Positions 1 through 27,368 of a stretch of DNA of 64,000 nucleotides are shown here, piece after piece (the first letter of the stretch is position 1; the number at the start of each line of letters is the position of its first letter). The notes beneath the pieces are model-generated. The model made no database searches. It saw nothing but the letters and a program-made list of their open reading frames with translations, and was not told the origin of the DNA. Made by a program: the position numbers and the translations under genes. Origin of the DNA: Epithemia pelagica (Eukaryota > Protista > Bacillariophyta); NCBI GenBank assembly GCA_946965045.2, contig OX337234.1, positions 1,922,001 through 1,986,000 of the forward strand, given 5' to 3'.

Positions 1-1089
1 TCCTCCGTTCTTTATCAGTCGAAAAATGCGACAAGTCCATTGTTACAAATTTCCAGAAACTGTGAGAGAACGAGCTCGGAGGGAACCAGCTGCACAAGAA
101 ATTTGGCAGCTTGGTGCACGAGGCTCCACAAATGGCACCGATCTGCACCAACGGGCCTTCTGGACCAATTGCCAAATCTGTCGAAACGGACAATATTGTT
201 CCCGCGATTTTGACTAGAAAGAGGCGTAAACTGCTGAAGCGCTGGACTCTTACTCCATTGAGAAACGCCTTGACTTCGGGTATACCGGAACCGACAGCAT
301 TGGGAGACACAAAAAGACAAAGCATCGATGACAGAAGAGCGAGGAGGAGATTGGATCCGGCATAAACAAGGAAGGTTGATAAACCTTTATGTCCTTCCCT
401 CCATAAATTGTCTAAGTAATGTGATCGGAAGTCTCTGATCCGTTTCGCTGCAAAAATGGTGGTGAGATCGTACGTTCCATGACGACGCGAGGAAGACTTT
501 GTTCAATCTACTCACTTTGGTAGGCCAAGAAAATTGCAATGGTAGCGGTGAGCAATCCAGTCAAGACACAAAAGAACCATCCGGTGGCCGTTCGTCCCGT
601 GTATCCCCATGGAAATGGTGGCTTTTTCTTCCGAGTTGACTGCGATGGTGCTCCAAGGACGGGGGTGCGTGTGGATAAATCGGTTGGACTGTCCTCAATC
701 GCATCGTATCGAGCTTGTGCATATTCTTCGTTTTCCGCCAAAGGTATACTCTCCGGTATCGCACCTTCTTGACCGTCTTTTCTCGAGTCGTTGGAGGAAC
801 AGCCCATCGGTGCAAGGTAGCGATCCCTGGACGCTTCAATCGAAAAGTTGTTGACGACGCGTTCAAAGTCGAGGCCACTTGGATAGACAAGGTTCATCGT
901 AGAAATATTTTTTCTGGAATCGTTGTACTTATCATAAAAGGGGCGGCGAGATGCTCGTATCTTTGCAAATGACGATTTGGAAGATACATTCTCGACAAGA
1001 AAGCCTTTGAGGGGCACTTCTTCTGTTGCTACCTCCATCGTCCGTTCGCTACGGCTATGTGGGTCCGAGTTTCTGTCTTCTTCTTCCAT
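1..1089 (-). CDS. CLC: CLC-family chloride channel/transporter, 5' part (exon 1 1089-516, intron 515-448, exon 2 447-<1; continues off the left edge)
   Basis: Splicing GTGAGT(515)..TTGCAG(448) joins ORF 508-1089 to a frame absent from the ORF track. That frame reads ...LFVSPNAVGSGIPEVKAFLNGVRV...LVKIAGTILSVSTDLAIGPEGPLVQIGA, containing the CLC motifs GSGIPE and GxEGP. Exon 1 has GLDFE, similar to the ESLDY motif of CLC-6/7, and the first TM helix. Confidence 0.93.
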
Positions 1090-1750: not shown

Positions 1751-3608
1751 ATGTAGGTCGTTTGCGTTGAAATGCGAGTTCTGTTTGGGCAACCCGAGTT
1801 GTGGACTGATTAGGTTGGGTTAACATGACAAATGACAATCGCTTACCGTTTTTCTTGCTCGCGTCACAGGGTTTCGTTTCGCCGTAAGAACAAGAAGGAA
1901 GAGCCGGTGAAAGAGGCTGCGACAAAGCCCGCTCCTAAGGAAGAGCCTGCCCCGGCTCCTGCTGCTTCCAAGAAGGTAAGCTTTATATTGCTGTTTTTTA
2001 TTAGTTCGTTGTCCTGGATCACTGAAAAAGTTCTCGGAAATCTCAAAACAGCAACAGGCCACACCAAAGGCGGCTGCCGCCCCATCCAAGCCACCCACTT
2101 TGGACGACATTCCCGATCTCGTCGATCAAATGTTGAACTCGAAAGGAGAAAAGAGCGCCGCTGCAACGAAGAGAATCTACGAGCTTTGTGATGTCGGTCA
2201 CAAGCAAAATCGTGTTCCTATGGTGTGCTCCGGAAAGTACGATGTTCTGTCTCCCCTCGCCAAGTGCTTGACACAGGAGAGTGGAGATGGACGTCATTTG
2301 GCTTGTCTTGCACTGAATAACCTTTCCATCCCCACGGAGAACAAGCGTGTTATGGCACTAGGACCTGCCTCCAAGGAGGTCATTGGAGGACTCTGCAAAG
2401 TTATCGCCGAAGACAAGCAAGAGTCCTACTTGTGCTGCATTTGTCTCATGAACTTGTCATTCCTCGAGGCTAGTATCACATCAATTCTCCAACACTCTCC
2501 TTCCGACGGAAAAGAAATCCTCCCACTTGACAACCCCAACTCTCTCCTCCGTGTTTTGGAGAAGCTCTTGACCAACTCTCCTGCTGTTCCTAAGTCCGGT
2601 TCAGGAAAGTCGGAGGGCGTCCGCTGGGCCTGTGGTCTTATCAAAAACTTGGCCAAGAGCGAAGAGAACGCTGCCCTTATTGGAAAGACTGACATCCCCA
2701 AATGTGTCGTTGAAAACATTCGTTCCACCACCGCTCCTCCCTCTCGATGGACTTCCAACAGTCTTGAAGACTTTTCACTTTTTGTCATTTTGAACCTCGC
2801 TCAGTGGCCTGTTTCCCGAGAAACGCTCATCAACGCTGGTGCTGTCGATGTTATCAAGCCCATTATGGCTGAAGGCGACCTTCAAGGATTGAAGGCCACC
2901 ATGGCCTGCGCATTCCTCGGCGCGAACTGGGCTGCCTTCCCTGAAGGTGGTAACCCGGCTGCCAAGTCTGTTTCTGAGTTGATGACAAACATTGTAGAAA
3001 AGAAAGGCAAGGATGGCCAATATGCTTATGGTGTGTTCAAGTTGTACACCGCTACCAAAGCCTACAGAGACCTCGCACGTGCTGCCGCCAAGGCCGATCC
3101 CGAGACCAATAGCAAGGTTTTGGCATTCCCATCGGCGGTTGCGTTGACCTTGCAAATCATCTCCGATATGGTTATTTCATCCATGGATGATGCCGAAGGT
3201 GGTTCCAAGTACATCCCGGATGCCATGTCCTCCGAATATGCTGTTGGTGCTCTTGAAGCCATGCTTCCAGCAATCCTCCAACCTGCTGACCCACCTCGCA
3301 AGTCTGTCCAAAGCGAGAAAGCCTGCAGTGAAATTTCTCAAATGTTGTTGACCTATGCTGATGTCCCAGGAACAAGTGCAGAAGCGAAACAATGTGCAAA
3401 GGATGCTGCTGCCAAGATCAAGGATTCAACTTCATCGGCACGACCAATTCTCGAGATCTCGCACGATTTGTGGACGCAATATCGCAAGCGTGAAGGCCAA
3501 CCGCTGGACCAATTCGTCCCATCCGAGAAGGGAATTGAAGCTGACATGAATGGTCCATTGGACTTTTTGCCTTGTGCCAACGCGGAAGGCAGCTGCATCA
3601 TTCTCTAA
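1751..3608 (+). CDS. Armadillo/HEAT-like repeat protein with C-terminal CaaX box (exons 1751-1752, 1870-1975, 2058[or 2052]-3608; alternative start ATG 1832)
   Basis: Long ORF 2100-3608 of helical repeats (LACLALNNLS, WACGLIKNLAKSEEN, LFVILNLAQ) ending GSCIIL*. GTAAG(1976)..CAG(2057) joins it in frame to a Lys/Glu/Pro/Ala-rich exon. Confidence 0.75.
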
Positions 3609-3982
3609 ACAGTATGTATGTTGAAACTAGAAGAGAAGAGAGTGTGCTCTTTCTTGTTCCAGATGTAAGAATCACCGGGTTGTGAGAAGGAAAGCGCAGG
3701 GGTCCAGGAGAATAGTTATGGCCTGCAAGCGTTCTTTGAGACATTAACTATGCATTAATTTTACGTAATCATCCAATCATCAATTAAGAACCATTGTTAT
3801 ACGACAGGATTGAATGCGTCTCAGTAATACTTGTTTGAGACCACAGCACAAAAGTGCTATCGTTCATTGTGATAGTTAAGCGGAGTGGGTAGTTGCCAAC
3901 AGGTAGTGTTGCTGTTGGCAGAATCGTGCGAGAAAACCTTTGCCATGCCACCGTTGATTCTAAATACGCCTAAGCATCATTT

Positions 3983-5530
3983 CTACAGGATCTTGCTTGC
4001 AACCAACGTCAACTGATCTGGATAGACGAATTCGCTCTTTTGGGGTTCCATACGATTCAGGAGGTGTTCCGAAACTTGACGCAAAATCTTGTTGACTTGA
4101 TCATTCAACCGTGTGTCCGAAGAAAAGAGAGCTGTCCCAATCCTGTCGGCAAGCTCTTGCTCGTTCCAAACTTTGAGAACAGGACTGGATGCCGCCACAA
4201 CAAAGAAATGGTCGGTTGGTTCCATTGGATTGTTCGCGTCTCTTCTACTTGTCTGTGATTGTTGCAACTGGGACAGATTGAGTTCTTGGACGACTGGAGA
4301 GGCTGTAACGCCAGCATTCAGCTTGAAGCGTCCAGCACCAATGGCACGAGAGGCTGCAATCCCTCCAGCTGCAGGATCGTCCTTCACATACACCATTAGT
4401 TGGCCATTGGACTCGGATAGACTGCTTGTCGCGTCCGCCTGTTCGACCATACCTCCCGAGTCTTGTATTCTTTTTCGTTCGGATTCCATGTCGGGAGTGG
4501 CGGATTGGAGGATTTCGGCCTGACCCGATTGTGGGTTCCATCGAGCCAAAAACCCAATCGAGTTACCGGCCGATGCCAGAAAGACGGTGTTGGTATATTG
4601 CAGAATAATGAGCGCAGATGCACTGGCTTTGTTCCAGAGAGACTGATGCTCTTCATAAAGTTTCCGATCCATTGCTTCAAAGGCATGGGGCAGTATCTTG
4701 CTCTTTATTTTGGAATATGCCTTGGCATAGCGGCGAAATGGGTCCAACACAAGGCCTGGTAAATGCTTGACCACATCTTCTGCCACCATGTTCCCCATTT
4801 CGTTGATCCCATCGGACAGAACAATCATCTGGCCAATGTTTCCACCAGGGTGCTCTGCGCCATCAAACAAGAGTGGGTTGAGAAGAGCCGCATGGTTTCG
4901 TTTGTGAAAGTTGCAAGTTGTTGTCGACGTGTTGGTTGTCACCGCCGAACCCGTGCGTTGACACCCCAAAAGCATGGTCCGTAGACAATATCCTTTGTCA
5001 ACAGATGAAGAGGAATCGACTGCTTGGATGATATCTAAAGGGAAATGAGCTTGGCATGTCATTGTCTCGGAAGTTGTCGACAGTGTGCCCCCATCCGTTT
5101 GTTTCGGCTTGGAACTTTGTGCACAGGCTCGCGTCCCTCGGAATCTCAGAGATCCATTACTGAGAATATTGTTCTCATTGCCGTCTTGTACAATGAGGGA
5201 AGACGAGCCAATGGTCATATCGTGCAGACTCAGCAGATGAGGGTTGTTGTGGTTGGGTGGTGCATGGGACCTTGTGGCCATTCTCCAAACGCCAATAGCA
5301 ACCACCAGCAAGAACATGACATCCATCCATCGCATCATGACAAGGACAACCACTTTGCTTCCTGGACAAGTCCTTTTCCGGTCCATTGTCATGAGGGTCG
5401 AAAGAATTCCCCGTTCTTGTTGTTGCAGTCGCCGTTGGGATTGTTGTTGATGTTTGGGCAGTTGTTGTTGTTGCTTTCGCGGATCGCCACCAACACCTCC
5501 CCGCCGAAAGCGAAATGGGTTTCGATACAT
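3983..5530 (-). CDS. Membrane-anchored PP2C-fold protein with degenerate metal-binding motifs (probable pseudophosphatase); ORF open to 5599
   Basis: Gln-rich N-terminus and a TM segment (VVVLVMMRWMDVMFLLVVAIGVW), then PP2C-like blocks: LSDG, ASASALIILQYTNTVFLASAGNS, ERKRIQDSGGMV, GIAASRAIG, FFVVAASSPV, PDQLTLV. These align with the intact PP2C at 32226-33968. Confidence 0.7.
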   Translation of the reverse strand: MYRNPFRFRRGGVGGDPRKQQQQLPKHQQQSQRRLQQQERGILSTLMTMDRKRTCPGSKVVVLVMMRWMDVMFLLVVAIGVWRMATRSHAPPNHNNPHLLSLHDMTIGSSSLIVQDGNENNILSNGSLRFRGTRACAQSSKPKQTDGGTLSTTSETMTCQAHFPLDIIQAVDSSSSVDKGYCLRTMLLGCQRTGSAVTTNTSTTTCNFHKRNHAALLNPLLFDGAEHPGGNIGQMIVLSDGINEMGNMVAEDVVKHLPGLVLDPFRRYAKAYSKIKSKILPHAFEAMDRKLYEEHQSLWNKASASALIILQYTNTVFLASAGNSIGFLARWNPQSGQAEILQSATPDMESERKRIQDSGGMVEQADATSSLSESNGQLMVYVKDDPAAGGIAASRAIGAGRFKLNAGVTASPVVQELNLSQLQQSQTSRRDANNPMEPTDHFFVVAASSPVLKVWNEQELADRIGTALFSSDTRLNDQVNKILRQVSEHLLNRMEPQKSEFVYPDQLTLVASKIL

Positions 5531-5803: not shown

Positions 5804-6861
5804 ATGAAAGTGTCTGTCATTCTTGCGTTTGTGGCACTCTGGTTGTCCTTTGTTTCAGGCTTCTCTCGACAATCGATTCCCTCCTCTACCGGGCAATCGT
5901 CTGGAGTTCGACTTGGTCACTACTACGCACCTGTTGTGGTAGATCCGTTCTCTCGGACATCATCACCCTTGCTCCTTCATTCGTCCAACCATGCTGCTGG
6001 TGGATGGTCCCGTAAAACCAACCCCTGGATGGGTGGGAGAAAAACCACTGTGGCCGCCGTCCCACGTGGTGGTGGTGCAAATGACAGCAGCAGCACCACC
6101 AAGACCCGTGCGGCGGCAACGCCCTATGATACAGGAACAAAATGTCCAGCAACAGGATTCATGTCAGTTGTGGCATCCTTGTGGGGATCCGGAGGAGTCC
6201 TATACATTCTCGCCAAAGCCATCAAGAGAGTCATTCCCATTGCCATGGAACCATTTACGGAAGGTGCCTTGCGGCCATTGACGCAATTCGAACTCGGGTA
6301 AGTTCTCCATGATTTTCCACAAGAAAGAGTGAACGATTCGTATGTATCGGAGCACGATGGATTCGTTTGGAAGTCTCTCATCGCAGTGCCCTCTATATTC
6401 AAACAACATTGTTGTCTCGTTCTCTCATCCGATTTGCATCCAGGGCTTATATTGTGACGTGCTTATGGTTTGCATATGTTGAAGGATACAAAGGCTTTCA
6501 ACAAAAGTTCAGCCCACTCGTTGTAAAGCGCTCCTTCACTCTGGTTCCGGGTCGCAATGGGACGCGTTGGTATCACTATCTACTAGCCCCCTTTTATTCC
6601 ATGGGAATGATGCATGCCACGAGGAAACGTCAAATTGTAAGCTGGTCCGTTTCGATTGGAATTGCTGCCATTGTAGCGGCCGTCAAACGATTCCCCTACC
6701 CGTGGCGCAATATTGTGGATGCCGGTGTGGTGGTGGGCCTCACGTGGGGGAGTCTCAGTATCCTTCTCTTTTACGTCCAATCGTGGATGACGGGCAAACC
6801 ACCGGTTGACATTGACGCGGCGCTCCCAGACACGGTGAACAAAGAAAGCGCTTCGGGCTAA
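5804..6861 (+). CDS. Multi-pass membrane protein of unknown function with bipartite plastid-type presequence (exons 5804-6297, 6444-6861)
   Basis: MKVSVILAFVALWLSFVSG-FSRQS (signal peptide then Phe, then a Ser/Arg-rich stretch). GTAAGT(6298)..CCAG(6443) joins two ORFs in frame. Several hydrophobic helices follow. Confidence 0.7.
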
Positions 6862-7022
6862 GTTATTAATTTTGAAGCAATGGAGCAATCGTTGTTAGAA
6901 GTAGCATCATACAAGAAACAACTTTGTTGATTTTTATATTTACATGACATGGAGACAACGACCGGAGAAAAAGCAAACGTTTGCATTCTGCCAAATGAAA
7001 ATGCACCAAGAAACACCTTGCA

Positions 7023-7409
7023 CTACGACCGTCCGACAGCTTTATTGGTAATGTGTGGATCATTGGGTAGTTCTGTTTCTTCTATCGTCTCCATGTGTTG
7101 TTGTTCCGCATGAACTTGATCTACCAAATTGGCAATATCGCCATCATTGTAGGTCGTATAAGTCGAATTCCACCATGTCGAGAACTGATTGAAATCCATT
7201 TTCCCATCCGTCCCATACTTGTTCATAATATGGTCCACATCTCGACCCTGAAAGTGCGTCTTGTCATCTTTCATCATGGCCTGCAGGTCTTGGCGAGATA
7301 TGTAGCCTTTCTTCTCCTTGTCGAAACGCGCAAACATGATTCCCAGGGTTCCACTGGCCGGTTCCGGTTCGGCCGGAGCCTTGGCTGGCTTGAAACATAA
7401 TAATCCCAT
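7023..7409 (-). CDS. Small EF-hand Ca-binding protein with N-terminal MGxxC acylation motif
   Basis: 128-aa ORF starting MGLLCF. EF-hand loop FDKEKKGYISRQDL and a second, degenerate hand YGTDGKMDFNQF. Confidence 0.75.
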   Translation of the reverse strand: MGLLCFKPAKAPAEPEPASGTLGIMFARFDKEKKGYISRQDLQAMMKDDKTHFQGRDVDHIMNKYGTDGKMDFNQFSTWWNSTYTTYNDGDIANLVDQVHAEQQHMETIEETELPNDPHITNKAVGRS

Positions 7410-8126
7410 GTGTTCTTGGCTTTTGGTTGATTCGTTGCTGGTACCAAAGTGTTAATTCTCTTCCCAACGAGTCGTACAATAAAGGTTTTTGTATCTTCTT
7501 GTCAGACTTCCGATTTTTTGTCTGTGGGGCGCTTCTTGGTCTCTGTTGTTTGCGAGCCGAAAGTAGAAAATGGGCAAATGGTATTCATCGGGTCGTTCTT
7601 GTGTTGTTGTTTCGAAATCTGTGACAGATGATTGTGACACGAAGACGACAGACGAAAAGGCTATGTGTACTACCCAACCTTCACCAATACCCTCCGATTG
7701 CGGGGGTACCTCCCGTCTGCTGTCCATACGGTTATTCTCAAATTTTCTTAAAAAATGTTAAAATTATTTCTGGCAAATTTCTTTCGATTTAGCACATTAT
7801 TATAACGTCCAAGCCAACTGTAATGACTGGCTTCGCCCTATTGTGTAGCCGCTTCCGCTCATGCATGACCGTGAGCCGTGAGACTTGACGAGACATGGAC
7901 AAAGAAATCTACAAGCCCATTTTGTACTCAATAGTCTATTGTTTCAGAAGCGAGTACTCTTTACGCAGTAGTGGATCTAGCTTCACGGAATCATCACACA
8001 CACACGCACACCAAACCATGAAATTCACACACATGGTGCATGCACCTCTAGAGGAGTATCAAAACAAGCTCCTGGCACTTTGTCTATGGGAAAGATAAAA
8101 GCATAGTCCTCTACTAATTTAGGCTT

Positions 8127-8204: not shown

Positions 8205-9580
8205 TTGTTCATTGCACTGGTGGATTGTGATGTTTCATGTTGTCATCCTTCCTTTGATGCATTCCACCTTCACTTGTGATCTAGGTGGATGGTTTTGACC
8301 ATAGAGTTGTCACTTTGGTCGTTCGTCCGGCTGGGTGGTTTTCTTTTGGTTTTTGGTGTGCTCACTGCTCATGGTCGTCTTTTGTGGTGTTGCTCGAAAA
8401 GTGAGACGATTCTTGGCCCCATGTGCCAGCAATACAAGGCGTGACCGGCGCGTCGATTTCGAACGACTGAAGGGAGGCTGGCGATATCACCCGGCTGGCG
8501 CTTTGGGAAAAAATACGAGACAATTTTTTTCCATTCGGATGACGGACGAACAAAGGTACCCCCCCAATCGCACCCTATCCGTCGTTTTCCTTACTCCTAG
8601 CTCTCTAGTAGAGCACTCCCTTACACGTCTAATCCTTACCTCTCCCTTGGTAGAGAGGCACTCACCCTCATGCATAGAAAAGTTCCTCTAGCTAGGGACA
8701 TACACCTAAGCTTCAAAATGTTCGCCTCACCTACTCCTGGGATTCGAAAAACTTCTCCTCTAGAGGAATAGCAATACTTGTATGAATGTGGACTATGCTC
8801 TAAACGAAACAGGCATTTGTATCAAGACTCATCACGTAGCTGCAGCGCACGTTCACCAATAACATGGAACACAGCTCTGCAAACTGCAAATGGCAATTCC
8901 TCTACAGAATTCATCCCATTCCCATTATTTGTCGATTATCCATCGCTTCCGGCACCTCTTCTCGCCATCTTCGAAGTTCGTCTTGAAATTAGGTGACAAC
9001 CTAAAGTTTCAAATGCTGAAAATGATGCTGGGGACTAGGCCTTATTATGAAATTCTGATGATGGGACAAACTTGAAACGCGCAGGATTGATGTGGAAAAA
9101 GCGACAGAAGGAAAAAAGAACAAAGACAAACTCCATCTTCTCCATATTGTCCGTAAGGACGCACCCTGCCAAGGTACGGCACTTTTGTGTTTTGTGCGTT
9201 GTGCACGGTCTTCTCATTGGGGCGCAATGTATGATTGTGAAGACGCAACAGAAGAACAATAGAAGAAAAAATAATTGTCCCCTCCTGTTTGAAGGAAGCA
9301 AGTCCTTCAATATTCGATACTCTATCCGAAGCTTTTCTGCCGCTGTTATTATTATTGCTTCGATCCTATTGTTCGTTCTGTTGCTAGACGGACTTCATTC
9401 ACAGTATCTTACGTAGAATTCACGGATCAACATTCTTTGTTGAGTCACCCATTTTCCAGTATCGAAACATCAGACGAGGTTCAATGGCTTCAAGTGAATC
9501 AACATTCAGATAGTGAAATTGGAGCCTCGAAAAAGATCCGCTTGAGCAATCCTTGTTTCCTTTGGAAAGTGGGTGGCAGA

Positions 9581-10409
9581 ATGTTTCGTGGTCGCAAAGA
9601 TAGAGAACAAAATAAGAATCGGCATCGTGGAACTGCCGCGAATAATAATCAAGCTCCCCAACCACCACATCAATCCAAAAGAATAAGGGCAAGGGGAAGC
9701 GAAAGCACTGGTAGATTGTTGGATGCAAGCATTCATTCCAACATCAGTACAGATGCAAGTAAACATGTGAGGAGAAGTACCGTAGACCGCGTGTCCTTCA
9801 CTACCATCGAGATACGCGAGTACGCACGAACGCTTGGTGATAATCCTTCCTGTACCAGCGGCCCTCCTGTATCGTACGTTTCTGCTTGTGATCACTTATT
9901 GGATCTTCGTGTGGCACTGACCCAAACGATTACTGCTTTTCAACAGGATTTCATGGGAGTATTTCCCCTCCACCTTCTTGTCGGTGGATGATTATGAAGG
10001 TAACCGGCCACCTCGTCGGACGAATATAGAAATGATATTGCCACGAGATTTACGTCAGCGCATGTTGCGAAAAGAATGGGATGTTACTCAAAACCAGATT
10101 GCTGCCCAGGTGCGCACGAATATACGGATCAAGAATCAACGTCGTACAACAGTGAATAATTTGGACAAATCGACAAAGGTCGAAGAGACAGTGGAAAATG
10201 CACGCAGAGTGATAGCAAATGTGTTTGGATCTGGGTCTAAGAAAAAGATGCGCGAGCTGGAAGAGCTCATGAAAAATTCGGAGAAGGCGCGACAGCAAAC
10301 ACTTGGACCAGAGTTATCCAGGACCTGTGATGAAAGCCACCCCGAAGTCTACATGGACTTAGTTGAAGACGAAACAGAAAAGGAAGAGAAGCATGGTGGC
10401 AATGAATGA
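9581..10409 (+). CDS. Uncharacterised diatom-type protein, VxF..IEIREY-LGDNPSC-GPP-WEY family, copy A (exons 9581-9873, 9947-10409)
   Basis: GTACGT(9874)..AACAG(9946) joins RVSFTTIEIREYARTLGDNPSCTSGPPVS to ISWEYF...SVDDYEGNRPPRRT...KNQRRTT. Same motif order and intron position as 18952-20345. Confidence 0.75.
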
Positions 10410-10958: not shown

Positions 10959-13385
10959 ATGATCCGCCGAAGTGGTCGAGGAACTGCAGCTGCATACGCT
11001 AAGGCAAATCTAAAATATGACACCATGGAATCCACAGAGAGTTCTAGCGTCAAACGAAGCCCCGATAGTCGACAGTCAACGAAGCCGTCGTCCAAGAAGC
11101 TCAAGACCGCCAACCTTTCTTCAGAATCCATCATTCCAGAATCTCTGTCTGGCGTGGTTGACCCAGAGGCTGGAATCGATGGTACCGTTACCCTGTTGGA
11201 TAACATGCCATGTGATGTGATGCTTGTGCAACTTGATCCAGCCAAAACCATGGATAGGTTCTACGTGCTACAGCTGATCGAAACTCCAACGAACAGCTTC
11301 ACCGTCCACTCACGCTGGGGACGAACAGGAACAAAAGGACAATCTCTGAAACAAGATTTTGCCGCGTCGCACCTGGCCGAAGAATGTTTTATGAAAAAGT
11401 TCACTCAAAAGACTGGTCTTACATGGGAACATCGGGCCGGATCCCCAAAAGTCGGCAAATATCGCTTCATTGCTCAAGATTATGAGAACAAAAAAGTCGG
11501 ATTTTCCGGTGCATTATGGCGATATTGGCTTGATCATGGTGTCGATGGAAAGAAAGAGGGCTGGTATGACTTTGATCCCGTGGATATGATCCAAACTGAG
11601 CGACTGTTCTCTGAGCACACCAAAAACTCGGGGTTGGTCCGTCGTTGGAGAAAATTCGGTTCTCACAACTATGAGTTGGATTTGGCAAGTATGACTCAAA
11701 CGGATGTCAAAGACAAGACGCGCTCGGTACGCCGCATCCAACGATGTCCCAGAGACTCAAACAAAGAAGAAAACAGCGAAATAACGTCAGGGACCAAGGC
11801 AAAGACTGACGCTAAGATCAAGCCACCACCCACCACACCTGCTCGATCTTCCACCGTTCCAAACGTTGTGACACCCAATGTTGGACCAGATGTTTCTGTG
11901 TCTCGTCCCCCGGTAGATCCTGAAGTCTTTCTCCACAATATAAATGCGGCTGATTATGAAGTGGTTGCCTTTACAAGCAATCCGAACCGGTACTACAGCG
12001 TGATGTTAAACCAATGCAATATAACCAAGGGAAACAACAATAACAAGTACTACCGTATACAGATGATCCGGGAGGTTGCTTCGAGTAAGTTTTATGTTTG
12101 GCAGAAATGGGGAAGGGTTGGAGAGCCTGGTAGATCATCCTCGTCGGCCCTAAAAGGTCCATATGCCAGCGAAGAACAAGCTCTACGGGAGTATTCCGGA
12201 AAGTTCAAGGCCAAGACTGGCAATGCATGGGATACAGAGAACTTTGTTAGCAAGTCAGGAAAGTATACGTTGATTGAAATAGCCGATGGTATGAACACAG
12301 AGGAACCGAGTTTGGAGTCAGTTGAGTACAAGCCATCGAAGCTTGATCCCAAAACAAAGGACCTTGTGGAGGTGCTGTTCTCAAAAGAAATGCGCAATGA
12401 GGCACTAGCCAACTTCAAGCTGGATTTGAAACGTCTGCCATTAGGAGTGCCAAGTCAACAACAGATTCAGCATGGTATTTCCATTCTTCAGAAGATTGAA
12501 AACAAGCTCGGTGGAAACTTGGTTGCAGGTTCTTTTGATGAGCTTTCTTCTGATTTCTACACTGCAATTCCCCATTCATTTGGTCGATCTCGCCCGCCGA
12601 TTATCAACACATCCAGTTCGTTACAAATGCGGTATGATATGTGTAACATCTTGTTGGACATGTATTCGACCAACGAGACGATTCGGCAGCTAGAGGACAG
12701 AACAGAGAGTAACTCCGTGATAGTCCGGGAGAACCCTGTTGATCGCCATTATGAAAGCCTCAATACTGATCTCACGTTGGTGGATGACAACTCCCTTGAA
12801 TACAAGACAATCGTGAACTACTTTCAGAATACACGTGGATTGCATTCCAGATCGCACATGTTAGATATCTGGCAAGTCAACCGTCGTACTGAGGGCGAAC
12901 GGTTCAAGCAATTCGATAAGTTGGACAATCGGCGGCTGTTGTGGCACGGGACCAACATTGCTGTCGTGGCACCGATTCTCACAAATGGCTTACGCATAAT
13001 GCCGCATGCCGGAGGAAGGGTTGGTGCCGGTATTTACTTGGCCGCTTTGCAGGAGAAAAGTCAACAGTACACAAGCGGTTACAACTCCAAATATGCTTGC
13101 ATGTTTCTGTGCGAGGCCGCGTTGGGGAAAATGCACAAAATTAATTCTGATGGACACCATGCTTCTTCGCTTAAAAAGGCCCCGGACGGATTTGATTCTG
13201 TTCACGCTGTTGGGAAATGGACGCCTCAGGAATGGGGTGAAATGCTAGTTGATGGAAACAAGGTTTCTGTACCGGTTAGCGAAGCGGAACAAAAGACCAG
13301 TGAGACAAGCTTTTCACACGACGAGTTCCTCTGTTATGAGGAAGCTCAGGTACGTCTTCGATACATCGTCACAATCCGTCTTTGA
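10959..13385 (+). CDS. PARP3: PARP3-like ADP-ribosyltransferase; architecture WGR-WWE-WGR-PARP regulatory-catalytic
   Basis: Two WGR domains (RWGRTG, KWGRVG) and a WWE-like block (WRYW...WYDFD...NYELDLASMTQ). Regulatory domain starts SKLDPKTKDLVEVLF. Catalytic H-Y-E: LLWHGTNIAVVAPILTNGLRIMPHAGGRVGAGIY and FSHDEFLCYEEAQVRLRY, closely resembling vertebrate PARP3 motifs. First in-frame ATG 10959 (alternative 11025). Confidence 0.9.
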   Translation: MIRRSGRGTAAAYAKANLKYDTMESTESSSVKRSPDSRQSTKPSSKKLKTANLSSESIIPESLSGVVDPEAGIDGTVTLLDNMPCDVMLVQLDPAKTMDRFYVLQLIETPTNSFTVHSRWGRTGTKGQSLKQDFAASHLAEECFMKKFTQKTGLTWEHRAGSPKVGKYRFIAQDYENKKVGFSGALWRYWLDHGVDGKKEGWYDFDPVDMIQTERLFSEHTKNSGLVRRWRKFGSHNYELDLASMTQTDVKDKTRSVRRIQRCPRDSNKEENSEITSGTKAKTDAKIKPPPTTPARSSTVPNVVTPNVGPDVSVSRPPVDPEVFLHNINAADYEVVAFTSNPNRYYSVMLNQCNITKGNNNNKYYRIQMIREVASSKFYVWQKWGRVGEPGRSSSSALKGPYASEEQALREYSGKFKAKTGNAWDTENFVSKSGKYTLIEIADGMNTEEPSLESVEYKPSKLDPKTKDLVEVLFSKEMRNEALANFKLDLKRLPLGVPSQQQIQHGISILQKIENKLGGNLVAGSFDELSSDFYTAIPHSFGRSRPPIINTSSSLQMRYDMCNILLDMYSTNETIRQLEDRTESNSVIVRENPVDRHYESLNTDLTLVDDNSLEYKTIVNYFQNTRGLHSRSHMLDIWQVNRRTEGERFKQFDKLDNRRLLWHGTNIAVVAPILTNGLRIMPHAGGRVGAGIYLAALQEKSQQYTSGYNSKYACMFLCEAALGKMHKINSDGHHASSLKKAPDGFDSVHAVGKWTPQEWGEMLVDGNKVSVPVSEAEQKTSETSFSHDEFLCYEEAQVRLRYIVTIRL

Positions 13386-13654
13386 TGCAAATGGAAAATT
13401 GCGTACTCTGCTTTGTCATCAACTGGTTGTCGGCCTTCATTGTTGTTGTTGTTGGGAGGTTCCGGATGCATTTTAGTTATCTGATTTTTATATTCGGCAG
13501 TATTCTTATTATAATCCATGTGACGAAGATTTATTTTATGGTTGGTTACTTCTAGAGGTTCAAGTGAACCAGAAAAGCTGTAGAGTCCAATATCATTAAA
13601 TGTGCATAGGCCACGATCTACAAATGGATGTAATGAAACAGTAGTTTTCTTCAT

Positions 13655-17700: not shown

Positions 17701-17986
17701 TGTTCAGCGAGAAATTATCAGAGCTGCTTCCTCGAGGCTTCTAATGAGCAAGTATATTGTTTCAGCAGCGGTTGCTCCAATATTTGTGCGTCATGGTCGC
17801 ACCCTCCCGGAACTTCTAAGCGGCTAGAAGGCCACAGTATCATGTTTTCTTGTATGATTCATCATATCCTCAGCGCTTCCGAGGAGTTTATCCAAGCGAT
17901 GGATGTCGCATGATCGGGACTCGGGAATCGGGACTCCTTAATATGTATTTTGAATTGAACTTCCCGTAGCAGTATAGCTAGTGTTA

Positions 17987-18751
17987 GGCTATCTCCACCC
18001 GAGCGCCGCTATGCTGACGTATTGGGGCTTTCTGATTGGCCTCGCTATCCGGATAGCGGAATAGCGGAGCCAAACGGAAATAAACTCCACGATCTCCGTT
18101 AAAAGAACGCCGCTATTTCGCGTTGCGCGTACGCCCTCTCTTGTTTCGGTTGAAAAGGGGTGCGGCTTGCGGAATTCAAACAAGACAATCAACGAGAGCA
18201 CAAAGCATAAACCAAAGATGGAGGACTCGTTGTTCTCCCTCTTCATTGTTGACTGTCATGGTGAATCATGTTGTTGTTCATGGCCAATGTAGATGTAGGT
18301 TGTAGTTTGCAGTCCAATCGTCCTATTGTATTCCCTGTCCCATTTCCGATTGATTGTTTGATAATCGAACACACCAATAGTTTGAATGATGCATTTGTTT
18401 GATTGTTGCATTCCTTCCGATCCGTGATCCTCGAATCATCTTGCTGTGCATGGTTCTTGTCCCATTGTAGGAAGTAGGGAACACAACAATGGAAAAAGAG
18501 ATGGTAAGCGATCGTCACAAATCAATACGTGCCATTGCCATGTTTTCGACAAGAGAGATACTGTTGGCAGCAGACGTTAATTTATTTATGCCGACGGTTA
18601 TATTTTGCTCCGCTATCCGCTATTTTCCCCGCTATTCGGGGCCCCAAATAGCGTCAAAAATAGCGGATAGCAGAGCTGTTTAGCGGTTAGAGGAGATGGT
18701 GGAGTTCGATAGCAGTTTTTGGACCTTTAGCGGCCCCGGGTGGAGATAGCC
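17987..18751. mobile_element. Non-autonomous DNA transposon (MITE), PIF/Harbinger-Tourist-like, copy 1 (765 bp)
   Basis: Perfect 15-bp TIR GGCTATCTCCACCCG (17987-18001) / CGGGTGGAGATAGCC (18737-18751), flanked both sides by TTA (17984-17986, 18752-18754). Near-identical second copy at 26564-27368. No transposase ORF recognised. A 3-bp TTA/TAA TSD is characteristic of PIF/Harbinger. Confidence 0.88.
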
Positions 18752-21464: not shown

Positions 21465-22456
21465 TTCGAACTATTGTCTGACAAAAGCCATGACAAGCTC
21501 GCATTGAAGACTTGTATTTTGGAGCATCAAGAATCCTTATTTCTAGTTTGTAGGCAAAGTGTCACACCTCGCGTTGCAGGTAACGTTCCCGACTAGGCGG
21601 GTGAGCTGAATCAAAAATCAGTTAAACCCTATCTTCTTATCAATAGAGTCTCTAAGACTATGAAAAACGCGAGTGCCAACTGAAACGACCTAGAACCTCT
21701 GTGAGAGGAGCATATGGAGTTGTCTTGGGGAGAAAGACGGCTGTTGAGTCATAAAAGGACTCTTGTTATCATATTGCTGTGTATGAAAGTCTAGATTTGA
21801 GGTAGTGGCGGAGTCGAATGTTGAGTCAGATCATAAGTCTGCTTTTTTATTCTCGTGGCTGCAGAATTGTCATTTATCATATCTTCTGGCGATTTCTTCC
21901 GATGTGTCATGCGTTATCTTCTCTCTGGCGATTGGTGAATGGAACTACTGAAATGAATTGCTCCCCCGAGAAACCGCGCTCTAGTAGGGGCACGAGGGCA
22001 TATGATCTCGTCTGAAATGTAGACGGGGGGGATATTTTTGAAAGTTCGAAGTGGCCAAGTTCATCATGACTTTACTTTGTTGAGAACTCTCCCGTGTCCC
22101 TTGTGACTCGAAGCATGCTGTTGAATCCGAAAATGTTGCGTTGTGGAGATGGATCTGGTTCCAGTGTCGGCGTGCGCGTCCCGCCACATGGTGACCCCTG
22201 GCACGGATTTTTCTCTCTTTCCTTATTTAGTTTTTTGGTCTTGATCATGTACTGGCGCCGGCACAGCTTTTTGGACTCGTTCCATTGATTGTGGGCACGC
22301 GTTGTGATGTTCTATCATTGGTAATGTAATATGACATGAACCATGAACCTATTATTTCAGCCCTGACGCAACCAATACGACAAGAGATTGGCCATTAAGA
22401 CGACCAAGAAGACATCGGAAGTTTAGACGGGACAACCACTTCCCGACGATTTAAAA

Positions 22457-25400
22457 ATGATTGCTTCATCATCTCTAAAACGGTTGTCCGTCGCAGTGGT
22501 GGTGCTGTTCATCCATCAACCGATCGACATTTGGACTTTGGCGAGATTTACTGAAATCGGTGACAGCGATAATGATCATGCCAACAGAAATGTTGACCAT
22601 GCAAAGCGTCAGATTGACTGGGTGCGATCCAAAGGGGGGTTTGTAACCTCAAAGGTTGCAATTAGGCGTGTTGATCCCAACGATGATACATCTCAACTTG
22701 GTGTATTTGCCACGGAAGATATTCAAGAAGATGAGATGATTCTATCGATCCCACGTGAATGCTTGATTACAAGTGAACAAGAGAAACCTGATTGGGTCTG
22801 TCGAACGTCACGCAATCTCGCTCGAGAAATGAAACTTGGCAGTAAATCCAAGTATGCGCCATACATAGAGTACCTCAAAACGCTCCCCTATGGTCAGTTG
22901 CCGAGTATGTGGAGCGCAGGGGGGAAAGATTTGCTTCTCCAGGTGACCGGAGGAACAGACGAGGCGGATGATCAAATCATACCACCTTTTGGTCCAGCAG
23001 CATGGCTTGACAACGAATGGCGCAGAGAATGCAACGGTTCAAATGATCGGAAGAAACAACACGCGTTTCTACTAGTGATTCAGCGTGGTTGGGATGACCT
23101 TCTTATTCCACTTTATGAGCTATTCAATCATCGGAACGGAAAATGGCTTAATACAAAAAGCAACCGTGTTCATGATTCCAGTCAAGACGTTCAAGTCTAT
23201 GCGTCAAAATTGATCAAGGCTGGGGACGAAATTTATGGCAGCTACACACATTGTGAAGATTGTAGAGGAAGGGTGGATAACTATGGTACTCCCGAATTAC
23301 TACGGGATTATGGTTTTGTGGAGCAGTACCCTCAAAAGTTCATTTTCAGAGAGCAGGGAGTTGCATTTACCGTTGATCTGCCGCCCGATGATGATGACGA
23401 ACTGCAGTTGATCTGGCATTCCGAGGAAGTAGGCCCAAATGACAGCGATAAACTCGAGTTCTTTGCAGAGCAACTTAAGCGCCTGCGCCAGGTGTACTCC
23501 ATGTATATGAGATTTCGTAATGAAGGCATTCCATCCTCCGAAATGCATACACTCCGCTTATTCACTCAGTCCTATATTTTGGCCATCCAACTTTTGCTTG
23601 ACGTGGCCACTGGCGTGACTTGTGCAACACCCCCGGAGGAAGATGGAAAAGCGATTGCAACAGGGCAATGTTACATTTCTTCACAGCGTTACAGCAAACT
23701 CGACAAGCCTTACGAGGACTACGATTTGCGCACCTGTGACAAGGACGTTTCATTGGATTTCTCGTCGTACTATCAACTGGATCAAATTCAATCACATTAC
23801 CAGGTCAGCTCCTACATACAAAGTCCGTATACCAGGGATACTTGCTTTGATCTGGGTACGTGTAAGCGGTGATTGTGGCTTCAGATCATTCTTTTTCTTC
23901 TCACAGCCTGGTTTGTGTCCAATGCTTGGCTCTCAGATGATATTTATCAAATATGTGGAAGTTACCGTCCTCACTACCGTACGTCGTCGGTTATGCTTGA
24001 TTTCAAATCCATCACCCTATGTTCTCACGATATATTGTGCTGAACGATTTGAATTTTTCTAGATGAGATGGTGGTTCATTACACAGCCCGCTTCCTTTCC
24101 AAAGTTGAGCGTGTCCTGTTTGTAGGTGGTGGGGATAGGTGAGTCTCAGGTTTACCAAACTCTCCCCTTTCAATCCGGAAGCTAACTCTTTTCCTCAGCA
24201 TGTTGCTTCATGAGGTCCTCAAATACCCCAAACTGGAATTTGTCGTCGGACTAGAGCTAGGTATGTTTCGAATCATTGTTGTTGTCTTCTCGTTGTTATC
24301 GACTTCTCAGCTCGTCTTGTATGTTTCAGATCAAACGGTGACAAGAGGGGCATTCAAACACTTTGGAACGCAGCCACATTGGGACAATGAAAAGGTGCAG
24401 TGGTGGTACGGTGATGCTGCCAAAAGCTTGCTTATGCTTCCAAAGGAATACTTCGGAACTTTCGATATGGTGTTGGTGGACCTCAGTGAAACTGTGATGA
24501 GTGCCCTTGTCACAAAGGATTTGGATATCATGTCGGCGCTTTCGTTGCTTCTGAAGCCCGAGGGTATCTTTGTCAAGGTACGTGTGGAAGCATACACATC
24601 CTATGTGCGGACTCACAAAGAAAAGGGCTTACATGTAAGTTTGTGCAGAATGAATTATACTTCGAAAAACTGAACCCAATTTTCAAGCACACAATCCAGG
24701 TACATTTTTACGATGTACCTGTTGTCTGCAGTCAGAGCTTGTGCCTTGGAAGTAACGGTTTAGATTTCATCCATCGAGAGTTGACTGACCACAAAGTTGA
24801 GACTAAGCTTGCATTGTTAGACAATGTTGATCACGACCTCGAAATTGTTCATGACTATTTGAGCAACCCCAACGCAGAAAAGCATTGTGCCACAGATGAA
24901 GAGAAAGAGGAACAAGCTGAACAAGAGACAAGTCCCGGTGTTCTCATGATCGTTGAAGCGGAAAATGCCAGTGCCGTTCTTGCTCCCTCCAGTGCCCTCG
25001 AAAGTGTTCTGGTTCCAGCGTTGAAAAAGGAGGGCCTCTCAGTTGTATCTACAGTTGTGTCAGATGATGGTTCAGGCGTGGTTCTGATATCCATATTGAG
25101 AGAGGGGTATGTGGTTGCACGAACATGGCCGGAACACAAATATTGTGCATTTGACATACACCTATGGAGTAGCTTTGACAATCACGACAAAATCAAGCAA
25201 TCGTTGGTAACAGCTGTTGGTGGAGAGTCTCAATCCACTTCCTCGTATCGAATCGTGGCTGGCGGTATGTTTGGCCTGAGCACGTGGAGAGAAGATTACA
25301 AAGCTCGCGGTCCAAAATTCACGCAAGATTGCAGCAAGCCTCCAGGACCAGATCAAAGTTCGAGTATGGACTCCGAAACTATCGATAGTATACTTGTTGA

Positions 25401-26499
25401 TATGATGGATATCAGTGGATGGAAAAATGTTGTTGCAGCCGTAACGTGCGGGCCAAAGGACCAAGAGTGCCACAGCATTGGTCTCGTTTCAAAGCACTCG
25501 TCTGTTCGCAAGACGATTCCGCTTCACACCTGTCAGGTCATGCACGGCATCGAGAACCATGAAGATAGCGCGAGTGAACAGTATGCATGCGAGTTGGAGT
25601 TGTTGGACCTCTTGATAGGGTCGACCAACGATGGTGATAAGATTTCACTTCTTGTTGTGGACATCTCAGCTTCTTTCGCCTTGGCCCAAATTATCAACAA
25701 AATTGCCGTACGCCTCGCAAACAAGATATTCACGGAGGATATACAGGTGGTTGCCCCGATAGAAGATTCAACAGAAACTTGGAGAAAACATTTTGTGGAT
25801 GAGTTCAGAGATGTCATTCCAGAGGAGCCGGCATTCATGGCTGATGTATTGTTTAACGGTACATCAAATAGTCTGCAGATTGTAAGCTTTCTCTCCGGTG
25901 ACGATCATTTCATCACTCACATGAAAGAATCCGTTCAAAGCATTGAATCGCGGACTGGCCTCGTGGCTGACATTCGTGGCTTTGGAGGAGGAGGTTTCAA
26001 GTTTCAAGAGAATTTCGAAGCATCTCAGTGGTTCTTGCCCGGGGATTACGATCAACGAGGCCCCTATGAACAGTGGCAGTCCCAGCAGCCCACAGGCCAT
26101 CAGTCAATAGTTCAGTTACAGGCGCACGGCGAAGGCAATGAAACAGAGTTGTCCACGGGCACAGTGAAAGATTTGTTGATTAACTCACTTTCAGCCTTGG
26201 AAATAGAAACCAGCATTCCTCCTCAAGAATTGGACATCGGAGATGGCAGTGTGATTGTTGCATTTTTGTCAGATGGAACGGGGCATATAGTGACCTTATA
26301 CGATGGCAGAGATCACATGTCGTTGAACATTTTTCTCTACGAGGAGTCATTCTCTTTTGCTGACGACTTGGGATTTGAATTCAAGCAAAGGAAGCCGTCA
26401 CTTGCTGCTGCTTTGTTTGACGAAATGCCCAGAGGCTACGGCCGAGTGGTGAACTTTCTCGATGGCCAGGAACGTCGTGGAGAGCCTCACTGGGTTTAG
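22457..26499 (+). CDS. Multidomain SET methyltransferase + aminopropyltransferase (spermidine-synthase-like) + two degenerate AdoMetDC-like domains, 1225 aa (exons 22457-23855, 23937-23978, 24063-24138, 24199-24260, 24330-24577, 24649-26499)
   Basis: Five canonical GT-AG introns give one open frame of 3678 nt. Hydrophobic N-terminal leader. SET motifs LIPLYELFNH, GDEIYGSY, LLRDYGFVE. APT motifs YHEMVVH, VLFVGGGDS, GLELDQ, YGDAAK, FDMVLVDLSE, LKPEGIFV. AdoMetDC-like ILREGYVVARTWPEHKYCAFDI, plus a second, weaker copy near the C-terminus. Confidence 0.85.
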
Positions 26500-26563
26500 G
26501 TCTGCACATGCAACCATAGAGACCCCATGGTGAAAATGATCATATAGGAATAGTCTTCACTTA

Positions 26564-27368
26564 GGCTATCTCCACCCGAGCGCCGCTATGCTGACGTATT
26601 TGGGCTTTCTGATTGGCTTCGCTATCCGGATAGCGGATTAGCGGAGCCAAAGGGAAATAAACTCCACGATCTCCGTTAAAAGAACGCCGCTATCTCGCGT
26701 TGCGCGTACGCATTGCGCATATGCCCTCTCTTGTTTCGGTTAAAAAGGGGTGCGACCGCGGAAGTTGCGGAATTCAAACAAGCAAGACAATCAACGAGAG
26801 CACAAAGCATAAACCAAAGATGGAGGACTCGTTGTTCTCCCTCTTCATTGTTGACTGTCATGGTGAATCATGTTGTTGTTCATGGCCAATGTAGATGTAG
26901 GTTGTAGTTTGCAGTCCAATCGTCCTATTGTATTCCCTGTCCCATTTCCGATTGATTGTTTGATAATCGAACTCATCAATAGTTTGAATGATGCATTTGT
27001 TTGATTGTTGCATTCCTTCCGATCCGTGATCCTCGAATCATCTTGCTGTGCATGTGCATGGTTCTTGTCCCATTGTAGGAAGTAGGGAACACAACAATGG
27101 AAAAAGAGATGGTAAGCGATCGTCACAATCAATACGTGCCATTGCCATGTTTTCGACACGAGAGATTCAAAGTTTCACTTTTGGCAGCAGACGTTAATTT
27201 ATTAATGCCGACGGTTATATTTTGCTCCGCTATCCGCTATTTTCCCCGCTATTCGGGGCCCCCAATAGCGGCAAAAATAGCGGATAGTGGCGCTGGTTAG
27301 CGGTTAGAGGAGATGGTGGAGTTCGATAGCGGTTTTGGGGCCTTTAGCGGGCCCGGGTGAAGATAGCC
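26564..27368. mobile_element. MITE copy 2 (805 bp), same family and orientation as 17987-18751
   Basis: Left TIR GGCTATCTCCACCCG preceded by TTA. Right TIR CGGGTGAAGATAGCC has one mismatch and is followed by CTC, so the TSD is not intact. The body is collinear with copy 1 apart from small indels and substitutions. Confidence 0.85.

Follow-up and report, generated by a model that had tools for sequence, protein, structure and literature searches.

A transcribed diatom fusion gene that joins a SET domain and an aminopropyltransferase domain to a degenerate AdoMetDC-like module

How diatoms make N-methylated long-chain polyamines, and how the lysines of their silaffins come to be modified with polyamines, is a long-standing question in biomineralisation, and to our knowledge no enzyme has been shown to carry out either task. 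The locus described here bears on this question. It lies in a stretch of 64,000 nucleotides from the diatom Epithemia pelagica (assembly GCA_946965045.2, contig OX337234.1, positions 1,922,001 to 1,986,000, forward strand), which we call the window and to which coordinates refer unless another sequence is named. A six-exon gene at 22457-26499 on the + strand, recognised from a row of open reading frames (ORFs) and a spliced contig, joins a SET domain to an aminopropyltransferase domain and both to a C-terminal part related to S-adenosylmethionine decarboxylase (AdoMetDC). Is this a single protein, which of its domains can be catalytic, and what might they do together?

The gene does not settle how polyamines and modified silaffins are made. 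It does add a full-length gene, verified by its transcript, to the best candidate family, and by stating which domains can and cannot be catalytic our analysis defines concrete constructs and point mutants for biochemistry. The fusion class itself was already known; new here are the transcript-verified gene model, a set of family-wide Gly, Arg and Trp substitutions in the AdoMetDC-like part, and a structural reading of the C-terminal module.

Diatom genomes encode AdoMetDC–aminopropyltransferase fusions, sometimes with an additional domain of the histone-methyltransferase type, that have been proposed to make and N-methylate long-chain polyamines (PMC12029483, PMC3820600, PMC6356823). An earlier note on this DNA, written from the sequence alone, described the class as known and its biochemistry as largely unproven, an assessment with which the reviews agree (PMC12029483, PMC3820600, PMC12803844). 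As late as December 2025 the diatom fusion proteins, of which Nitzschia inconspicua has 32, were said still to 'require further study' (PMC12803844), and a silica-proteome preprint does not mention these fusion enzymes. By its domains, the window gene belongs to the diatom class of SET/aminopropyltransferase/AdoMetDC-like fusions described by A. J. Michael in 2011: the same domain set occurs in one polypeptide, the named relatives are all diatoms and, as far as citing reviews describe the class, nothing essential differs.

Gene model and family

All but the last of the ORFs share one frame, with stop-bearing gaps between them. The GC content is 46-50% across the locus and the introns are short with GT..AG borders, a composition and an intron type that point to a eukaryote. 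Direct evidence of splicing comes from X5, a public run from the same organism as the DNA-like runs that contain this stretch. A single X5 contig of 3762 nt spans 22464-26590 with 0 mismatches and five GT..AG joints, its blocks being 22464-23854, a 43-letter stretch of exon 2 between two joints, 24063-24136, 24197-24258, 24328-24575 and 24647-26590. Exon borders were set from these joints together with the splice dinucleotides read off the sequence. The resulting six exons total 3678 nt, or 1225 aa plus a stop codon, and the transcript continues as a 3' untranslated region (26500..26590) at least to the end of the contig. A single protein of 1225 aa is what the earlier note had proposed, with splicing to be checked against RNA and separate transcripts as the outcome that would count against it; the one contig that splices all six exons through five GT..AG joints bears the proposal out. 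The gene is intact and transcribed.

The five introns measure 81, 84, 60, 69 and 71 nt. The first four lengths are all multiples of three, which leaves exons 1-5 in one frame, and the stops sit within the introns. An acceptor for intron 1 at 23906, taken from a splice model made by eye, was dropped; the RNA contig places it at 23936. The contig begins 7 nt after the ATG, which was chosen because it is the first start codon past an in-frame stop 11 codons upstream and because relatives have similar leaders. Residue numbers for the full protein were obtained by arithmetic from the exon coordinates, and the searches and structure predictions below were made per exon, per domain or through relatives.

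It could be argued that the locus holds separate genes or transcripts and that the fusion is an artefact of annotation, as prokaryote-style gene calls divide it into four ORFs. An unspliced contig over introns 1-2, found in the marine metatranscriptome run X1 (331 nt on the opposite strand over 23835-24166, with 2 mismatches and one nucleotide deleted), could be cited to the same effect, but is probably DNA or pre-mRNA from a related strain. The joining of six exons in frame across GT..AG introns by one contig already refutes this explanation, and proteins of about 1200 aa that are colinear with the whole model, derived from transcripts in Entomoneis and Corethron and predicted from the genome in Epithemia, also speak against it. 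We regard it as having practically no remaining probability.

Relatives of the protein are numerous. A word search with exon 6 returned 72 and a search with exon 1 returned 121, these including many SET–aminopropyltransferase proteins and stand-alone SET proteins with leaders, and a search from a longer relative returned about 60 proteins of 1150-1600 aa, many with all three Pfam domains. Many named diatoms encode similar proteins of about 1200-1300 aa, and the relatives with a species or genus name come from Cylindrotheca closterium, C. fusiformis, Epithemia clementina, Entomoneis, Corethron hystrix, Chaetoceros, Mayamaea, Ditylum, Thalassiosira and Seminavis. These are all diatoms, centric and pennate, although most matches are metagenome proteins, so that restriction to diatoms is unproven. 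The closest named full-length relative is ACA910_007868 of Epithemia clementina, a protein of 1200 aa that is colinear with the window protein through every exon at 58-62% identity; the colinear relatives, among them the transcript-derived proteins of Entomoneis and Corethron, measure 1200-1220 aa.

Leader, SET and aminopropyltransferase domains

Exon 1 (22457..23855; aa 1-466 plus one base), which ends at a contig joint with GT at 23856, encodes a leader, the SET domain and a post-SET region. The SET domain (aa 81-263; 22697..23245) was delimited with Pfam, a family profile and conserved columns. It matches PF00856 with an E value of 5.7e-10 and 40 bits (cut-off 22.4), and a profile built from 41 relatives matches SETD3 (9e-11), SETD6 (2e-6) and Rubisco LSMT (4e-5) in the Protein Data Bank (PDB), with the columns of the Asn-His motif and the catalytic Tyr aligned. 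That motif (N224-H225) and Tyr263 are kept in the window protein, and within the family almost no variation is seen at His225 or Tyr263. Like SETD3, SETD6 and LSMT, the window protein has an insertion within the SET domain as well as the Asn-His motif and the catalytic Tyr, and unlike them it is fused to an aminopropyltransferase. To judge from these residues, the SET domain is probably active as a transferase. Members of the SETD6, LSMT and SETD3 type methylate protein side chains. Stand-alone diatom SET proteins of 390-440 aa, which have leaders, are close relatives (35-43% identity), and the diatom-specific SET methyltransferases or 'BacSETs' (Nemoto et al. 2020) are counted, with SETD3, SETD6 and LSMT, among the nearest known proteins.

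The first residues of the protein (22457..22522) form a signal-peptide-like leader, with a basic n-region followed by a hydrophobic core at aa 10-19 whose mean Kyte-Doolittle value over these 10 aa is 3.27. A comparable hydrophobic stretch before the SET domain, together with an initial methionine, is present in 31 of 39 N-termini from the family. Twelve cysteines are conserved in the family alignments, four of them in exon 1 and eight in exon 6. Some relatives, among them P0071, P0234 and P0259, carry an ShK domain, a cysteine-rich module that is typical of secreted proteins and here forms the end of the protein. Because of the basic n-region and hydrophobic core, the leaders of relatives, the conserved cysteines and the ShK domains, we infer that the protein probably enters the secretory pathway.

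These features also bear on the idea that the protein is a chromatin enzyme, that is, a nuclear histone methyltransferase coupled to polyamine chemistry. The literature does name the SET part of such fusions a histone N-methyltransferase domain (PMC12029483, PMC3820600), and one relative, P0009, has an Agenet/Tudor-like domain at its C-terminus. However, the N-terminus offers a hydrophobic leader rather than nuclear features, cysteines are conserved, and the closest structures are those of the non-histone enzymes SETD3, SETD6 and LSMT. A nuclear role is accordingly very improbable in our estimation.

The aminopropyltransferase domain runs from exon 2 to the start of exon 6. Exon 2 (23937..23978), a segment of 42 nt fixed by the joints 23854>23936 and 23978>24063, begins the core and contributes Gln471 and Tyr480, the latter being the first residue of a Tyr-His-Glu motif completed in exon 3 (24063..24138). 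Exon 3 ends with GGGD and two bases of a Ser codon (Asp505 and Ser506), and exon 4 (24199..24260), which covers the region of strand beta-2, ends with Leu-Glu-Leu-Asp and its acidic ribose-binding residue Glu525. These assignments combine the spliced contig with family alignments. Exon 5 (24330..24577), placed by the contig and by mapping on the spermidine synthases of P. falciparum and B. subtilis, contains Gly-Asp-Ala (Asp555) and Val-Asp-Leu-Ser-Glu-Thr, which has Asp577 at the catalytic position and Glu580. Exon 6 (24649..26499; aa 610-1225 plus stop), delimited by the spliced contig, carries the end of the domain and then the C-terminal module.

Taken alone, the ORF at 24200-24670, which comprises exons 4-5 and reads through intron 4, scores 18 bits against PF01564, under the cut-off of 22.9, and full-length relatives in which the domain is uninterrupted score 48-66 bits. 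A family profile that includes the window exons matches spermidine synthases at 1.2e-19. By comparison with the P. falciparum and B. subtilis enzymes, the kept residues are Gln471, Tyr480-His481-Glu482, Asp505, the ribose-binding Glu525, Asp555 of Gly-Asp-Ala and Asp577 at the catalytic position. The cofactor loop GGGDS, which crosses the junction of exons 3 and 4 (24125-24138 plus 24199), aligns with GGGDG of the P. falciparum enzyme, and Val-Asp-Leu-Ser-Glu aligns with its Val-Asp-Ser-Ser-Asp. In 290 proteins fetched, 141 occurrences of the glycine-rich loop read GGGD and then Ser, Asn, Ala, Thr or Leu, with Gly never in that position, and two occurrences of the loop lack the Asp; GGGDS is therefore a signature of the family. 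The canonical diamine-binding loop Asp-Ser-Ser-Asp-Pro-x-Gly-Pro is not present in these proteins, its place being taken family-wide by Asp-Leu-Ser-Glu-Thr-Val-Met-Ser. The altered acceptor loop suggests a different acceptor and is still compatible with catalysis, and by its conserved residues the aminopropyltransferase is probably active.

With these results, most of what the earlier note had read in the protein ahead of its C-terminal module stands: a hydrophobic leader is present at aa 10-19, the PF00856 match and the profile matches uphold an LSMT/SETD3-class SET domain, the spermidine-synthase fold is confirmed by the family profile, and Asp505 aligns with the Asp of GGGDG that contacts decarboxylated S-adenosylmethionine (dcSAM).

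The C-terminal AdoMetDC-like module

The larger part of exon 6 encodes a module of about 520 aa of a different kind. Its first recognisable part, which we call half 1 (exon-6 aa 92-225; 24922..25323), matches PF02675 (AdoMet_dc) at an E value of 7e-9 and 36.4 bits (cut-off 25), and the AdoMetDC of T. maritima (1tlu) aligns with it over 115 aa at Z 11.0. The alignment places a degenerate active-site motif at 25102..25167 (Glu-Gly-Tyr ... Arg ... Trp-Pro-Glu ... Asp-Ile-His-Leu-Trp). The T. maritima residues Ser63, which forms the pyruvoyl group, His68, which serves processing, and the catalytic Cys83 correspond in the window protein to Gly, Arg and Trp, as read from alignment with 1tlu and with the S63A mutant 1tmi, the pairing of Trp with Cys83 lying one residue past the printed alignment. 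The module shares its fold with the T. maritima and human (1jl0) enzymes and scores over the gathering cut-off of PF02675, but differs from both in the Gly, Arg and Trp and in having two halves parted by an insert of 200 aa.

The loss is not peculiar to this gene. All 72 of the relatives returned by exon 6 keep the degenerate motif. Of 125 proteins that share it, 123 carry Trp where Cys83 would be, and not one carries Ser in place of Ser63. The motif and its surroundings rank among the best conserved stretches of the protein, and it is from this strong conservation of a dead site that a retained, non-catalytic function may be argued. On this comparison of residues, the AdoMetDC-like part is a conserved pseudoenzyme, derived from the family and non-functional as a decarboxylase. 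The protein is therefore unable to make dcSAM itself and must be supplied with it from outside. A subclass with a catalytically dead AdoMetDC is said to have been set apart in Michael's abstract and proposed to act on silaffins.

An AlphaFold (AF2) model of exon 6, built from 57 sequences with a mean predicted local distance difference test score (pLDDT) of 82.9, resolves the module into three parts: half 1, an alpha/beta domain at aa 240-447, and a second AdoMetDC-like half at aa 480-605 (26086..26463) that packs against the first. Taken together, the two halves match human AdoMetDC (1jl0) at Z 13.5 with a root-mean-square deviation of 4.2 over 224 aa, the matched range of the model being 92..605. 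The halves also resemble one another by hhalign (probability 76%, E 2e-5), and a bacterial AdoMetDC-family protein of 271 aa (PF02675) in the ESM Atlas spans both, with a template modelling (TM) score of 0.71 by match over 224 aa. A reading of the alignment consensus found no catalytic residues in half 2. The AdoMetDC-like domains of the earlier note are thus real, being supported by PF02675 and by two halves in the model. They do not form the simple string that it described, since they make up a split sandwich with a degenerate Rossmann domain inserted, nor do they make the protein a self-sufficient machine, since Ser63, His68 and Cys83 are lost.

The inserted Rossmann-like domain (exon-6 aa 240-447; 25366..25989) was assigned to the class I methyltransferase/aminopropyltransferase fold from its domain model and from structural searches. 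Folded alone it reaches a pLDDT of 93.3. The top 50 rows of an exhaustive structural search (VIA) are all class I methyltransferases or aminopropyltransferases, with Z values up to 9.9 that lie just moderately over the background of the tool, and the aminopropyltransferases cover the longest range; the top Foldseek match is the spermidine synthase 1jq3. The glycine-rich cofactor loop is absent, with invariant cysteines in its place, and a near-invariant Asp follows strand 4. Neither Pfam nor NCBIfam matches the insert, half 2 or the first 94 aa of exon 6, the profile of the insert gives chance-level matches only against PDB sequences, and a search of the ESM Atlas by features gave no usable match. 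Descent of the insert from the upstream aminopropyltransferase found no support at the sequence level, as hhalign aligned only 15 columns round the Asp after strand 4 at E 0.34; an aminopropyltransferase descent is therefore a matter of fold and not of sequence. We therefore regard the insert as degenerate and probably non-catalytic.

With one enzyme-derived module certainly dead and a second Rossmann domain devoid of cofactor motifs, one might suppose that the whole protein is a non-catalytic scaffold in which the SET and aminopropyltransferase domains are pseudoenzymes too, and GGGDS does deviate from the canonical GGGDG. Nevertheless, the cofactor-binding and catalytic residues of both these domains are kept and nearly invariant family-wide, which makes such a scaffold improbable.

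A precedent for a dead AdoMetDC-like domain within an enzyme is human spermine synthase (3c6k), the top Foldseek match of the exon-6 model (E 8.5e-7). This enzyme arose from a bacterial AdoMetDC–aminopropyltransferase fusion; the N-terminal domain of animal spermine synthase has lost decarboxylase activity and is essential through dimer formation, and the human enzyme depends on it for dimers and for activity alike (PMC12803844). The human and the window protein both link a dead AdoMetDC-like domain of class 1b covalently to a Rossmann domain of the aminopropyltransferase type. The window protein differs in that no GGGDG loop is present in the Rossmann domain next to its dead AdoMetDC and that the active-looking aminopropyltransferase lies upstream; it also has a leader, a SET domain and another AdoMetDC-like half, and the sequence similarity is insignificant. 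The arrangement of a human-type spermine synthase, a dead AdoMetDC followed by an active GGGDG aminopropyltransferase, is thus not the one found here. Bacterial AdoMetDC–aminopropyltransferase fusions offer a further comparison, as proteins with PF02675 and PF01564 are among the ESM Atlas clusters nearest to exon 6. In those that have been tested both functions are active (PMC12803844), whereas the decarboxylase of the window protein is dead and its aminopropyltransferase comes first, and the TM scores by query are low (0.2-0.33).

We offer the structural hypothesis that this module, in which a degenerate Rossmann domain interrupts a dead AdoMetDC sandwich, is an analogue of the dead yet essential domain in human spermine synthase. 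A more elaborate arrangement can be imagined, in which the protein would be a pseudo-dimer made of two covalently linked aminopropyltransferase–AdoMetDC units; the Rossmann insert and half 2, which together form the second unit, and half 1 would have lost catalysis and, with disulfide-type Cys pairs, been reshaped into a luminal clamp that holds a lysine-rich silaffin segment or a growing polyamine chain for processive action by the SET and aminopropyltransferase domains. This version is speculative and, on balance, unlikely.

Proposed function and genomic setting

With a probability of roughly 0.4, we favour a luminal bifunctional transferase whose SET domain methylates, and whose aminopropyltransferase aminopropylates, lysines and the chains that grow on these, with S-adenosylmethionine (SAM) and dcSAM supplied from outside and the dead module serving as a platform. 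The SET domain would use SAM to N-methylate the epsilon-amine of lysines in silaffin- or cingulin-type proteins and the terminal amine of a chain still being extended, and the spermidine-synthase-type domain would use dcSAM, made by a separate active AdoMetDC, to add aminopropyl units to the same amines. Alternation of the two reactions could build up oligo-propyleneimine chains, N-methylated and attached to lysines. The last 520 aa would be a fossil AdoMetDC/aminopropyltransferase-like module acting as a structural, dimerising or substrate-holding platform, as in human spermine synthase; by this analogy a platform is its most likely role. We favour this scheme because of the single transcript, the kept residues of the SET and aminopropyltransferase domains, the conserved dead module, the spermine synthase precedent, the diatom-only named relatives and co-expression in Seminavis robusta, where the expression of 24 diatom-specific SET methyltransferases and eight AdoMetDC–aminopropyltransferase genes peaks together with that of genes for cytokinesis and the cell wall (bioRxiv 10.1101/2020.11.23.393678).

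Several points weigh against a luminal bifunctional transferase. A luminal enzyme would need both SAM and dcSAM within the endoplasmic reticulum or Golgi, which is undocumented, and the leader was assessed by hydrophobicity alone. We know of no SET domain that methylates polyamines, and SETD3 itself is a histidine methyltransferase. Searches and folds cover exons and domains one at a time, and what the dead module might do is argued solely by analogy.

The main rival explanation concerns the substrate. The protein might be a free long-chain-polyamine synthase that elongates soluble polyamines, for example putrescine, spermidine or norspermidine, while its SET domain methylates the chain nitrogens, proteins not being a substrate at all. 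In its favour, the reviews credit the fusions with a potential to make long-chain polyamines and to N-methylate them (PMC12029483, PMC3820600), the core of the aminopropyltransferase is intact, and a linear amine could plausibly fit a lysine channel. But the SET class acts on protein side chains, and the family has no active AdoMetDC, unlike fusions expected to make polyamines unaided; moreover, a luminal location, if real, would be the site of silaffin maturation. We consider a free-polyamine synthase possible but doubtful.

A broader alternative is that the protein is an enzyme of polyamine metabolism or protein modification unrelated to silica, acting for example on other secreted or cell-surface proteins or in general polyamine homeostasis. 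The window itself holds no link to silica, the neighbours of the gene being a ribosomal protein L17 gene, a DnaJ gene and ApoL-like genes, and with more than 30 aminopropyltransferase fusions per diatom diverse roles are conceivable (PMC12803844). Yet every named relative is from a diatom and Seminavis expresses the families together with its cell-wall genes, and a role apart from silica therefore seems to us unlikely.

The gene is not the only one of its kind in this genome. A paralogue lies 145 kb downstream on the same 2.18-Mb contig (locus L002), with a SET ORF at 3547-5169 and an AdoMetDC-like ORF at 6001-7866 in the same order and with 57-62% identity, and is directly followed by an ORF of 612 aa (8419-10257) for a 2OG-Fe(II) oxygenase with an Ofd1-type C-terminal domain. 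A second, related assembly (ERZ25042306) contains two loci with the same ORF order, one of them followed, as in this genome, by an ApoL-like gene. That gene stands a few kb downstream of the fusion gene in both cases (11661-13628 of locus L001 here, 8439-10352 of L003 in ERZ25042306), which looks like conserved local gene order. In Cylindrotheca closterium three full-length members (P0195, P0196 and P0200) occupy one 94-kb contig, which suggests a local tandem expansion of the family.

A colinear contig of run X2 covers 22429-26618 with 7 differences in 4290 nt, one of them at 22463, just past the start codon; these differences are allelic or strain variation of the source organism. About 60 nt past the stop codon begins a dispersed repeat of about 180 bp (26561-26740), a second copy of which, 90% identical, lies in the window at 17984-18150. 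In the DNA-like runs the repeat reaches a word depth roughly 100-fold that of the gene (14817 versus 133 in X2) and many contigs break at 26559-26561, so that the repeat is a high-copy element of the genome.

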